Positions 3,088 through 60,899 of a DNA stretch of 64,000 bases are shown in pieces; position 1 is the first letter of the stretch; every line of letters begins with the position of its first letter. Below the pieces are notes generated by a model. That model saw only the letters and a program-made list of their open reading frames with translations, ran no database searches and had not been told where the DNA came from. This DNA comes from Octopus sinensis (taxonomy: Eukaryota): positions 66,848,464 through 66,912,463 of the forward strand of contig NC_043011.1 in the NCBI RefSeq assembly GCF_006345805.1. The letters are read 5' to 3'. The translations under genes and the position numbers were made by a program.

Positions 3088-3124
3088 GGAAAAGAACAAA
3101 GAAAATAAATATGGAATATTTTAT
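3088..3124 (-). pseudogene. CRG1 signal-peptide exon 1 paralog with start codon mutated to ATA (IKYSIFIFFVLF)
   Basis: 37-nt exon ATA AAA TAT TCC ATA TTT ATT TTC TTT GTT CTT TTC C|GTAAGT. Same length, phase-1 donor and upstream flank as the other exon 1 copies; no in-frame ATG in the preceding ~10 codons. Confidence 0.7.
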
Positions 3125-4429
3125 TACGTAGTTTAGCGTTGGACTCAATAACTGCTCAATCTCTGACGATATAACGCGTAATTTTCTTTATAATAGTGAT
3201 GTAACATGTGTCGGAACGGTGCAAACAGCCTAATAAATTGGATTTATGGCGTTCTTTTGTAATATTTCAGACGTATTTGTTGATTTAGAGAAAATTGTCT
3301 ACATCATTACGTACGTTTGATGATTGTTTAAAAGTTTAAAGTAACTATCTTAATTTTGCCTGTAAATTTCTAAGCTTCAAAATGGTCGAGCGGCTATCAG
3401 GTATTGGAGGTTGTTGGGGTGTCAGCCTTTCAAACCTCATAGACGTCTGCTGGCAACATATTTAACTCGGGTAAGAGTAAACATACAGTATTTCTCTGCT
3501 CTTTTCACAGCTATATTTCGTTGGGAATTTAATTGTCTGAAAATCACTAATACGTTCGGGGATTCCAAAGTTATCCTGAATATCATCTGAGATAGCGGTC
3601 TAATGACTGCATGTTAGTTAAAGCAAGAGCTTTCAGTCTGTCCGCACTTACTACTTTACTTCCTATTTCACACAGAGAACGGTAAAGCGATAGAAGTCTC
3701 CTCGGAAGCGTAGAGGCGGCGAAATGTGTAGATGCGGGGGATGTACAACTTTCACCATAAGATATATCGTGACGGATGTGTATCTGCTTTTCTCAGGGGA
3801 AATAGGTCACAAACATACTTTCCCTTAACACAAGAACATTGTACACACACACACACACGCACACACACACACACTTATATATATTATATATTATATATAT
3901 ATATATATATATATATCTTCCGGCTACCCAGCAATGTAAACTACACACTACACACGTATTAGCGATTTCTTTTCCTTATTTGGACTTTTCTATACTCCTT
4001 TCCGACAAAGTGCTCAGCACGAATGTCAACTCCTTATTTTTACCAAGTGTTAATATACACATTCCTTAACCCGTTCTCTTGCTCTCCCTTAGCTGTATTC
4101 GTTTATTTGAACAGTGTTTCTTTATGTGAATTCCTGTGTTGAAGCATATATCGTTGTGTCTGGAGAGAGTCATTCAGTTTTAATGTTTTATTAACACACT
4201 CGCCGCTTCCATTTCCACTCATTTACTTCTTTATTTTCTAAAATTGTCCTTGCTTCTGCAACCTCTTCTTGAAGTAACTGAGTGTATTAAGTACTAAGAC
4301 ATTAATAGAGAATGTCTCACGCCACCCGAGGCACAACAATATATATATATATATATATATATATATATATATATAATATATATATATATATATATATATA
4401 TATATATATATATATAATAAAATATTAGG

Positions 4430-4715
4430 GAATAAATCCAAACTTACAGGGAAAAATAAGATTGAGGATTGAATCCAATTTTATAGTAAAATATTATATT
4501 ATTTTAATTAGAGATAAACCCACTATCAGGCAAATCATACAATGACATACTTAAGCCAATACATAAGATTATGAAACGATCGTAGTGTTATACTAAATTA
4601 TCTTTTTTTATAATTTTGATATATATTTAAAATAATATTAATTATTAATCTATGCTTTGGCTTAAGCTTTTCATTGTATGATTTGCCTAATAGTGGTTTT
4701 AAAATCTTCTATTAA
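4430..4715. repeat. AT-rich Penelope-type terminal-repeat fragment arranged as an inverted repeat around a half hammerhead (GAAACGATCGTAGTG)
   Basis: Same family as 11336-11775; arms ~4515-4570 and ~4650-4710 are reverse complements; the junction carries GAAA-CGATCG-TA. Confidence 0.6.
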
Positions 4716-59300: not shown

Positions 59301-60416
59301 GACTCGGTAAACCACCGCCTATTACTTGTCAAGCTTCAAGCATATAGTTTCCACCCGGATATTGTACGATGGGTTGGTGCCTTCCTCTCAGATCGCTCCT
59401 TCCAAGTCCGAGTTACTGGTTCGCGGTCCGACGTCTCCAGTGCGAGCAGTGGCGTGCCTCAAGGATCAGTGCTTGGGCCCCTGTTGTTCTTAGTCTTCAT
59501 AAATGCCTTGCCCGACGACCTCACGCAACACGCCCTTCTATTTGCCGACGATATCAAACTGGTCGCTCCTCGCGGTAGTATAGAGGATCTTCGTCGATGC
59601 CTCCACCACATTTGGAAGTGGTCTAACGATTGGGACCTGTGTCTGAACGTGTCAAAGTGCTGTCATCTGCCTGTCGGCTCTACTCCTGCAACTCAAATTG
59701 ATTTCGAGCCGGGTCGTCTGCTGCTGGAGAGGACCGATCAGGTAAAGGACATGGGTATCTTGGTGGATTCCTCCTTTTCGCCTTCGGCCCAGTGCGTCCA
59801 TGCTGCCAACAAAGCACGCGGATTTCTGTTCTTGATTCGACGGTCATTCGGAATGCTCACAGCAGCCATATTCCTACCACTCTATGTCACGCTGGTGAGA
59901 CCCATATTGGAGTATGGGATTCAAGCCTATTCTCCTTATCTCCTCAAAGACATACAGCATCTCGAAAGAGTCCAGAAGCTGGCTACCCGCATGGTTCATG
60001 GGCTCAGAAATTTGTCCTACGAAGAAAGGCTGAGGACACTCGACCTTTATTGCCTTGAAAAACGCCGCCGCCGTGGTGATCTCATTCTCGCCCACAACAT
60101 CATAAGCGGAAAGTGTAACCTCTCTAAAGAGCTGTTCTTCACTCCTGCTCCAGAGCGTCGGCTGCGGGGTCATTCCGAAAAGCTCTACCTGCGACGATTT
60201 CATCTTAATCGAAGGAGAGGAGCTTTCTCCTTCCGGGTTGCGGATCCGTGGAACAAGCTGCCAGACGAGATGGTGAAGATGCCGACGACCGCTTGTTCAA
60301 AGCCTCCCTGGACCTCAAGTGGCCTGAACTCTTTACATGAACACCACCCTGTACTTAACTCCATGTCCCCCTACATGGCCTTGCTATTTGCTCTTGAGCC
60401 AAATTAACTAACTAAC
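56327..60416 (+). mobile_element. Near full-length GC-rich CR1/L2-type LINE (ORF1-like + APE-RT ORF2) with (TAAC)n tail
   Basis: APE: YTNSCSL, IAITETWL, LGDFN, SDH. RT: 577-aa ORF with QHGF, LDFAKAFD, GVPQGS, FADD. ORF2 is split by a 7-nt deletion near 58640 relative to the 42.7-kb copy. Inserted in a (TA)n tract. Confidence 0.93.
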
Positions 60417-60899
60417 ATATATATATGTTAGTTATCTATGCGTATATATATACGCATAGATATAAGTATGTATATATATATATATATATATATATATATA
60501 TATATATATATATATATTATTTACATTATTATATGATTGAATCCCATCATCCTCTTCTAAGTATGTTTTATCCCGTATATATGTACATAAATATACATAT
60601 GTGTGTTCGTGTGTATGTGTGTATTATCCGTGCATTAGTTTGCATATCTATGCAAAAGTGTGGCAATTTCTAATATAAATATAAATCATATTATAAATAT
60701 GATGTAACAACTGTATCAACTGACGGAGAAAGCATGTAAAGTTGATCAATGACCTTCTACGTCATTAATACATTTACAACTTGTTTTCTTGTATATTCAC
60801 CAACACGACAGGTGTATAAAAGATAAATTTACAGAAAATGTGATTTTTCTCTGTACCCGTGCTTGCTGGTTTTAAATTTTGGAAATTTTTGCATTTTTA

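Follow-up and report, generated by a model that had tools for sequence, protein, structure and literature searches.

Gene clusters for conotoxins, for snake-venom three-finger and PLA2 toxins, and for molluscan and vertebrate host-defence peptides follow a common pattern, in which a short, almost invariant signal exon precedes mature exons that change faster than introns, the cysteine framework is fixed, and pseudogenes and fragments lie in the same tandem array. In the protocadherin and UGT1A clusters, paralogous promoter and first-exon units stand in a row on one strand and splice onto one downstream set of exons. Cephalopod genomes are known for lineage-specific gene families, few small secreted ones of which have been annotated, and gene predictors are defeated by the combination of 37-nt first exons and hypervariable coding exons. 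Here we analyse a locus of Octopus sinensis contained in a stretch of 64,000 nucleotides (NCBI RefSeq assembly GCF_006345805.1, contig NC_043011.1, positions 66,848,464 to 66,912,463 of the forward strand), hereafter called the window. A first-pass annotation had described five paralogous 37-nt signal-peptide exons in it, along with two promoters that had lost the exon, all on the minus strand. We consider it very likely that these 37-nt pieces represent the first coding exons in a tandem gene family, apparently restricted to Octopus, which follows a four-exon model, specifies a secreted product and evolves in the manner proposed below.

We designate the copies retaining an exon 1 as A, B, C, D and Z, the promoter relics as E and F, and the orphan exons as G and X. 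The first exons, the promoters and the upstream segment that accompanies them are placed as follows:

7578..7614, minus strand: copy A exon 1, MKYCVVFFLVIF, with a phase-1 donor GTAAGT; promoter core at 7615-7790
27716..27752, minus strand: copy B exon 1, donor GTAAGT; promoter core at 27753-27927
54002..54038, minus strand: copy C exon 1, identical to that of A, donor GTAAGT; promoter core at 54039-54213
36489..36525, minus strand: copy D exon 1, MKYSMIIFFLIS, with GCAGTT instead of the donor GTAAGT; promoter at 36526-36760
3088..3124, minus strand: copy Z homologue of exon 1, IKYSIFIFFVLF, with ATA for ATG and an intact GTAAGT donor, left of the assembly gap
60689..60868, minus strand: relic E, a D-type promoter without exon 1, 93% identical to 36581-36760 and ending just past the TATA region
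29642..29693, minus strand: relic F, a truncated promoter without exon 1, with the same breakpoint as E
54840..56327, minus strand: segment S, upstream of copy C, part of the duplication unit

Exon 1 of copies A, B and C codes for MKYCVVFFLVIF plus the first base of the next codon and is followed by GTAAGT. The exons of A and C are identical, and that of B departs from them by one synonymous base (ATT to ATA), which bears out the protein identity noted earlier for the starts at 7614, 27752 and 54038. An nhmmer profile built from the promoter and exon 1 was run, together with profiles of the other exons, against the window and the corresponding Octopus vulgaris locus L001 (OX597831.1:19,027,439-19,059,633 of the reference assembly GCA_951406725), 96 kb in all. 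It agrees with direct reading on all five exons and both promoter relics, with E-values of 7e-67 to 1e-44 for the five copies, 3e-18 for relic E and 0.027 for relic F, and it recovers nothing in the window besides these seven places; matches of this strength go far past what chance would give. The ATA start of Z and the broken donor of D are likewise confirmed on the minus strand; Z has no in-frame ATG upstream before a stop, and the remainder of its gene, if any, would lie past the window edge.

Counted from the start codon, all five promoters have their GTTACWTCA motif at -75 to -81, and a TATA-like box follows at -66 to -71. In a 220-nt comparison of promoter plus exon 1, identity to the A/B/C group is 98-100% among A, B and C themselves, 67-68% for D, 57-60% for Z and 78% for an O. 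vulgaris paralogue that we call H. The division into MKYC and MKYS subfamilies made in the first-pass annotation is not supported by this comparison, given that Z is 59% identical to D as against 57-59% to A/B/C, and that O. vulgaris adds another exon-1 type, MNYF. Between the older lineages (A/B/C, D and Z), homology is confined to the promoter, exon 1 and the initial tens of intron bases; as read from these alignments, D and Z are separate old lineages.

The 37-nt exons are real, but the repeated unit is larger than they are, and they belong to a four-exon gene. Copies A, B and C have in common a 265-bp core of 97-100% identity, in which 176 bp of promoter precede exon 1 and about 53 bp of intron follow it; to this core kilobases of flank are added. 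Segment S, whose open reading frames (ORFs) match no Pfam domain, has counterparts in B (28111-29482, 97%), in A (8273-9054, 95-97%, and 11005-12111, 80%) and in D (36766-37246, 69%). Relic F is weak when taken alone, but its synteny with relic E backs the assignment: the stretch beyond F (29640-29473) matches the one beyond E (60624-60457) at 92% identity, and the two relics have one common breakpoint and a common following sequence leading into segment S. Hence, both exon-deleted promoter sites are genuine but not independent; on the alignment, they are a single deletion that was later copied along with the B/C duplication unit of ~13-14 kb.

Two further pieces occur in the vicinity of segment S. 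About 400 bp lie between the promoter core and S in A (7790-8193) and C (54230-54629) and are absent in B; their translation contains the motif AEV.F..HPF.I repeated twice, and they suggest a short interspersed element inserted before the A/C split. A ~250-bp element, possibly a SINE (short interspersed element) or MITE (miniature inverted-repeat transposable element), is present in four copies that are 82-84% identical (15970-16203, 29185-29416, 56030-56248 and, inverted, 35780-36026) and partly overlaps the distal end of S.

The second exon came to light because the homology between B and C downstream of exon 1 holds a 97-nt stretch in frame with the phase-1 end of exon 1. The downstream exons of the window are:

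52319..52415, minus strand: copy C exon 2, RAVSYRHECNRIGKQHCPSTFVDPLQDTQGFC, 97 nt, entered in phase 1 and left in phase 2, acceptor ttttag, donor gtaaat
22714..22810, minus strand: copy B exon 2, 97 nt, with 20/97 differences from C in a setting where the adjoining intron is 97% identical
62787..62883, minus strand: fragment G, an orphan exon 2, RVRVFSRDCDGLARRPCPCSFVTPLNSTFEHC, acceptor intact, (AT)n in place of the donor
16865..16952, minus strand: copy B exon 3, RNISEFKSCIRRKSKACLNHFIDLELHMCP, 88 nt, entered in phase 2 and left in phase 0, intact, acceptor ttccag, donor gtaagt
46804..46899, minus strand: copy C exon 3, broken by an 8-nt insertion, an in-frame stop and a donor change from GT to CT
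39496..39583, minus strand: fragment X, an orphan exon 3, SYYRDFNKCFRWKSLYYSKRYRSKFNSICA, upstream of D, its middle cysteine lost
44607..44729, minus strand: copy C candidate exon 4, acceptor ttttactttcag, with TAA at codon 4

Exon 2 is 97 nt long in all five copies known from the two species and exon 3 is 88 nt long in five of six. Each of the two exons contributes three cysteines, and the cysteine codons, the AG acceptors and the GTAAGT/GTAAAT donors are conserved. Exons 1, 2 and 3 read through in frame in copy B of the window and in copies A and H of O. vulgaris; the third exon of B is identical in O. vulgaris, at L001 3571-3658. The candidate exon 4 is located 2.2 kb past exon 3, and in O. 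vulgaris copy A (L001 22073-22195) it reads through 40 codons without a stop. In copy B the first three exons are intact and exon 4 is missing, here and in O. vulgaris alike; a LINE and a Tc1 relic lie within intron 2 of this copy. Copy C has all four exons, of which the first two are intact and the last two broken. From 5' to 3' on the minus strand, the inventory thus runs G, E, C, X, D, F, B, A, Z: the window contains fragments of at least nine copies, none of them demonstrably complete.

The profile searches return no further copies of any exon in the window. Within the window, fragment G is preceded by no exon 1 and followed by no exon 3, and fragment X has neither an exon 1 nor an exon 2 belonging to it; a profile search finds no exon 2 or 3 within 4 kb downstream of D. 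A regular-expression search for phase-1 cysteine-rich exons behind A, D and Z yielded only noise, and profile searches likewise found none there. The orphan exons add support to the proposal that the signal-peptide first exons belong to paralogues in a tandem cluster with decayed copies.

A block of intron 2 is conserved in all copies (window 51895-51750 and 19947-19815; L001 18560-18640 and 30130-30260), and after it copy C has an open frame of 34 codons with three cysteines and a usable acceptor. An initial model of copy C that ended in this frame (51852-51750) was rejected. Its equivalents have two 1-bp indels in B, a stop in O. vulgaris H and a break-off in O. vulgaris A; the similarity of its peptide to the real exon 3 is matched by 247 of 2000 shuffles; and the real exon 3, with strong splice sites, sits further downstream. 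The frame is probably due to chance, though copy C could in principle end there.

O. sinensis, whose assembly is gapped, diverged ~2.5 million years ago (PMC10700109). L001 is collinear with the window from 20800 down to 5084, at 97-99.7% identity, and carries exons 1, 2 and 3 of copy A, together with the paralogue H, which lies downstream of O. vulgaris copy A and is not represented in the window. It was this locus that revealed the real exon 3, whose intron flanks are conserved. The features that matter for this comparison are:

4984..5083, no strand: assembly gap of 100 N; collinearity with O. vulgaris ends exactly at 5084, its right edge
L001 25665-25701, 29921-30017 and 31068-31155: O. 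vulgaris paralogue H, signal MNYFIIFVFLIF, exons 1-3 intact
window 4339-4773 and 11289-11908, L001 8614-9181 and 17876-18493: AT-rich palindromic repeat

In O. vulgaris, exon 1 of copy A (L001 12594-12630) is identical to that of window A, and exons 2, 3 and 4 come at +4.9, +7.2 and +9.5 kb, respectively, all past the point that matches 5084 and within the next 7.2 kb. For the left flank of the gap (1-4983, with Z), the next 17 kb of O. vulgaris contain no collinear sequence, and the only match of the flank there is the multi-copy AT-rich repeat, which is palindromic and matches in both orientations; anchoring the flank by the repeat at 4339-4773 was rejected because the repeat is multi-copy. 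Given the break of collinearity at 5084 and the unmatched left flank, contiguity across the gap, and with it the 4.5-kb spacing from A to Z, is not established. The true length of the gap is very probably much greater than 100 bases, and it probably hides exons 2-4 of copy A, the orphan look of whose exon 1 would then be an effect of the assembly. In the window, copy A consists of an intact exon 1, and its completeness cannot be judged owing to the gap; in O. vulgaris, the aligned exons suggest that the copy is apparently complete. None of the three copies with an intact exon 1 is thus demonstrably a whole gene in the window: C is broken in exons 3 and 4, B has no exon 4 and the rest of A falls behind the gap.

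L001 is the locus of the one protein by which the family is present in the databases. A HMMER search with the first gene model found this true relative, CAI9735856.1 (P0123), an O. vulgaris "hypothetical predicted protein" and the sole family member among 5.8 billion clustered proteins. The ORF MAKAIREIADCTVLSAISSEALTRNVIDLEVMSEEDVTTHTFHRRF, identical in both genomes (window 10334-10471, minus strand; L001 10001-10138), serves as its exon 1 in the O. vulgaris annotation, and the real signal exon, 2.5 kb downstream, is skipped; CAI9735856.1 is mis-modelled, its signal exon having been missed. This ORF has no Pfam match and lies within a 2-kb insertion in segment S of copy A.

The product of exons 1-3 of copy B begins with MKYCVVFFLVIF and continues as RAASDRHEC...HMCP. 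Exon 1 supplies the charged N-terminus and hydrophobic core of a signal peptide, which would be 16 residues long and cleaved after RA(A/V)S. The predicted mature part has about 58 residues, with six cysteines spaced C-x7-C-x14-C-x8-C-x7-C-x11-C in every intact copy. The AlphaFold2 prediction for copy B, made with three paralogues, is a three-helix bundle with helices at 2-15, 27-44 and 46-59 (pLDDT 91.6, pTM 0.75), and that for O. vulgaris copy A has three helices as in copy B (pLDDT 77-86). A word-indexed protein search with the first 78-residue model gave no match, and two strong-looking HMMER matches (P0121 and P0122) were rejected as translated tandem repeats. The pattern of variation described next raises the possibility that the product acts as a binding protein outside the cell, with diversifying pressure on its surface. 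Such a diversifying surface is typical of saliva and venom components, host-defence peptides and chemical-signalling proteins.

In most paralogue pairs, the coding exons are less conserved than the adjoining introns. Between B and C, exon 2 differs at 20 of 97 positions versus 29 of 885 in intron 1 (Fisher p = 3e-9); exon 2 of A, B and C is 74-79% identical versus 91-95% for the upstream intron flank; and exon 3 of B or C is 55-58% identical to that of O. vulgaris A, with 83-85% in the downstream flank. Over exons 2 and 3, the pair of B and O. vulgaris A has a dN/dS ratio of 2.5 (p ~0.02-0.05); the other two pairs have ratios of 1.5 and 0.9. At the other extreme, A and C are 100% identical over the 220 nt of promoter and exon 1, and four promoter sites pair window A with window C but O. 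vulgaris A with window B. Homogenisation between copies extends over the promoter, exon 1 and introns, and the pattern of identities suggests that gene conversion is probably responsible. Because A equals C and the four sites group by genome rather than by orthology, the mode of evolution is mixed. The cluster has what birth-and-death evolution predicts, namely tandem paralogues of different ages, lesions (D, Z and C) and fragments (E, F, G and X), but its copies have not evolved independently in the promoter, exon 1 and introns. The turnover by duplication and decay proposed in the first-pass annotation is therefore supported, but homogenisation and fast divergence of the mature exons have to be added to it.

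We accordingly propose the following course of events. Units of ~10-14 kb would have been duplicated to give A, B and C, their promoter, exon 1 and introns being kept near-identical, probably by gene conversion, with the two mature-peptide exons diverging much faster than the surrounding introns. Copies would die by deletion (E/F, G and X), by point lesions (the donor of D, the start codon of Z, and exons 3 and 4 of C) and by transposon insertion.

Several observations weigh against this reconstruction. The cleavage site was read by eye with the -3/-1 rule, not by a predictor. Exon 4 is based on two copies and an automatic annotation, and the hydrophobic tail that it gives O. vulgaris A is modelled with low confidence (pLDDT 50-67). 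Three spliced protein models have no exact match among ~15 billion sequences, and the full HMMER scan of 1.84 billion representatives, whose query was the first gene model with its wrong last exon, found one O. vulgaris model as the only relative. Synonymous divergence of exon 2 is raised too (dS 0.23 versus 0.03 in the intron), so exon-sparing gene conversion may explain part of the exon/intron contrast, and not selection alone. With no complete copy in the window, the local cluster could also be entirely dead. Taken further, this last point becomes the rival view that the family as a whole is dead here and that the frames still preserved in B and the O. vulgaris copies are remnants of a once-functional gene, a view encouraged by the lone mis-modelled protein in the databases, where no transcript-derived protein is found, and by the transposons within and between copies. 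We consider it improbable: between paralogues, exons 2 and 3 differ at 40-60% of positions and yet keep their length, frame, splice sites and six cysteines in B and in O. vulgaris A and H, dN exceeds dS in the closest intact pair, and a confident common fold is predicted for two paralogues.

The other explanations we hold to be far less probable still. The units might be alternative first exons that splice onto one downstream set in the protocadherin or UGT1A style, as the restriction of older-lineage homology to the promoter, exon 1 and intron start, and the lack of an own exon 2 for A, D and Z in the window, would allow; what makes this very improbable is that B, C and the O. vulgaris copies A and H each carry their own exons 2 and 3 before the next exon 1, and that the missing exons of A coincide with the assembly gap. 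Nor is there much to be said for the unit being a transposable element or a piece of satellite with chance frames for exons, an idea that likewise has only a slight chance of being right. The region is indeed saturated with LINEs, Tc1 elements, microsatellites and short repeats, and parts of segment S recur, such as the 250-bp element in its four copies. Against this stand three exon types in the right order, orientation and phase, splice sites conserved around hypervariable cores with fixed cysteine codons, a gene-like arrangement of every copy within the 96 kb, and the lack of any transposon protein domain in the unit. Least credible of all is that collapsed or duplicated haplotypes in a gapped assembly produced the near-identity of A, B and C, despite the perfect match of A and C over 220 nt: the chromosome-level assembly of O. 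vulgaris, which is independent, has A and the 3' part of B in the same order (C falls outside that comparison), and the copies differ in exon 2, transposon content and flanks. A secreted, tandemly duplicated gene family thus remains our preferred interpretation.

The mode of evolution is ordinary for such families. What is new is the gene family itself, which is essentially unannotated, as would be its possible origin from an RGM domain, considered below. Public protein data hold the family as one wrong model that skips the signal exon, and the exon model is usable for finding all members and asking where they are expressed, be it the salivary gland, suckers, skin or reproductive tract, and whether the fast-evolving surface reflects an arms race with prey or pathogens or over mate recognition. 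The locus is also a caution about assemblies, given that the "orphan" first exon of A is most likely a gap artefact.

The remainder of the window is AT-rich animal DNA, with a GC content mostly of 0.28-0.44, many microsatellites, LINE endonuclease and reverse-transcriptase ORFs, a Tc1-like transposase relic and a Ty3-type RNase H fragment; a scan of the window against Rfam returned no matches. Two stretches of transposon sequence adjoin the gene copies:

18320..22324, no strand: transposon load of intron 2 of copy B, a LINE fragment at ~20318-22324 (plus strand) and a Tc1-like relic at 18320-19362 (minus strand)
57460..60415, plus strand: CR1-like LINE with ORFs for an endonuclease and a reverse transcriptase; its insertion separates relic E from segment S of C

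The Tc1-like relic combines HTH_Tnp_Tc3_2 and DDE_3 domains, is frameshifted and occurs at the same place in O. vulgaris. The equivalent of the CR1-like LINE site is uninterrupted at the B junction (29473/29482). This LINE matches the PF03372/PF14529 endonuclease and the PF00078 reverse transcriptase, the latter being 40-53% identical to its nearest database proteins (from birds, turtles and flukes), and it has an inverted copy, 93% identical, at 40926-43634. Looking up a transposon ORF by exact match gave no result. Just upstream of it, a 247-residue ORF (56296-57039) includes a 121-bp direct repeat of 96% identity (56328-56448 and 56619-56739). A second LINE family with RVT_1 and zf-RVT domains occurs on the plus strand at 13069-15636 and 29793-32403, 94.6% identical to each other, with an inverted fragment at 34482-35219; because it lies upstream of segment S in A and B alike, it is probably part of the duplicated unit. 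The long ORFs at 49554-50462 (plus strand) are simple repeats of the (CTA)n type, read as poly-Leu or poly-Thr depending on the frame, and are low-complexity artefacts rather than genes.

Among described domains, the resemblance that stands out, a weak but recurring one, is to the N-terminal domain of the RGM proteins (repulsive guidance molecules). RGM_N (PF06535) is the top sub-threshold Pfam match for copy B, O. vulgaris A and P0123 (16.4, 14.9 and 13.8 bits, E = 0.011-0.069, cut-off 24.2); O. vulgaris H has no RGM_N match in Pfam. It is also the top PDB profile match (E = 0.16) and the only Foldseek match (E = 5.2, TM 0.42). Aligned by hhalign with RGMA and RGMB sequences taken from PDB alignments, the family scores 22.4 (probability 29%, P = 5.8e-4). 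None of 700 controls comes up to this score: 400 column shuffles peak at 16.4, and 300 shuffles with fixed cysteines at 17.1. By accepted thresholds, the Pfam, hhalign and Foldseek values all fall short. A point against membership in RGM_N is that RGM was picked post hoc as the best of ~25,000 families.

RGM_N, as known from RGMA/B/C (4UHY, 4UI0 and 6Z3J), is likewise a domain of ~60-75 residues with three alpha-helices and six cysteines, and the predicted three-helix bundle of the two paralogues agrees with it in this respect. With RGMA and RGMB, the octopus proteins have an identical C-x8-C-x7-C spacing of cysteines 3-4-5 and the common motif EFC....(F/Y)..C..R.SK.C; they differ in the spacings between cysteines 1-2, 2-3 and 5-6, in a shorter loop after helix 1 and in a shorter helix 3. 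In RGMB, the N-terminal domain binds BMP2 and GDF5; it forms a bundle of three helices with three disulfides, in which Arg100 and Leu103 on helix 3 are BMP/GDF contacts (PMC7354924). In four octopus paralogues, the position of Arg100, after the fifth cysteine, is occupied by L, Y, L or F, and that of Leu103 is hydrophobic (F, V, F, F). The octopus gene differs from full-length RGM in being just a ~60-residue domain with a 40-residue tail; no further exons or Pfam domains were found that could represent the C-terminal RGM domain with its autocleavage site or GPI anchor. It is conceivable, though we think it rather unlikely, that the family descends from an RGM N-terminal domain that was freed from RGM, amplified in Octopus as a stand-alone, fast-diversifying unit, and put to new use as a secreted protein binding either TGF-beta-family ligands or new targets in saliva, defence or signalling. 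If true, a domain of a conserved developmental co-receptor would have become a free and expanding effector family.

The comparison with the protocadherin and UGT1A clusters extends to the row of paralogous promoter and first-exon units on one strand. It ends with the downstream exons, which each octopus unit carries for itself: no shared constant exons were found, exons 2 and 3 being copy-specific in B, C, O. vulgaris A and O. vulgaris H. The water-borne pheromones of the Aplysia attractin type are molluscan, secreted, helical and disulfide-bonded, with ~58 residues and six cysteines. They are a lead in that the octopus product is alike in type, size and cysteine number; the cysteine spacing differs, and the searches made detected no similarity. 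Nor does the octopus family resemble the toxin and host-defence families in sequence: beyond the weak RGM_N signal, searches of Pfam, the PDB and the protein databases showed no homology to the signal sequence or cysteine framework of named toxin or antimicrobial-peptide superfamilies. It is also set apart from them by its predicted all-helical bundle, which is not a knottin, defensin or three-finger fold, and no pro-peptide is evident. The likeness to conotoxin, venom and host-defence clusters lies instead in the architecture with which we began, that is, the short, almost invariant signal exon, the mature exons outpacing the introns within a fixed cysteine framework, and the pseudogenes and fragments of a tandem array. 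As such, the locus is a textbook case of homogenised regulatory and signal parts standing beside diversifying mature exons.

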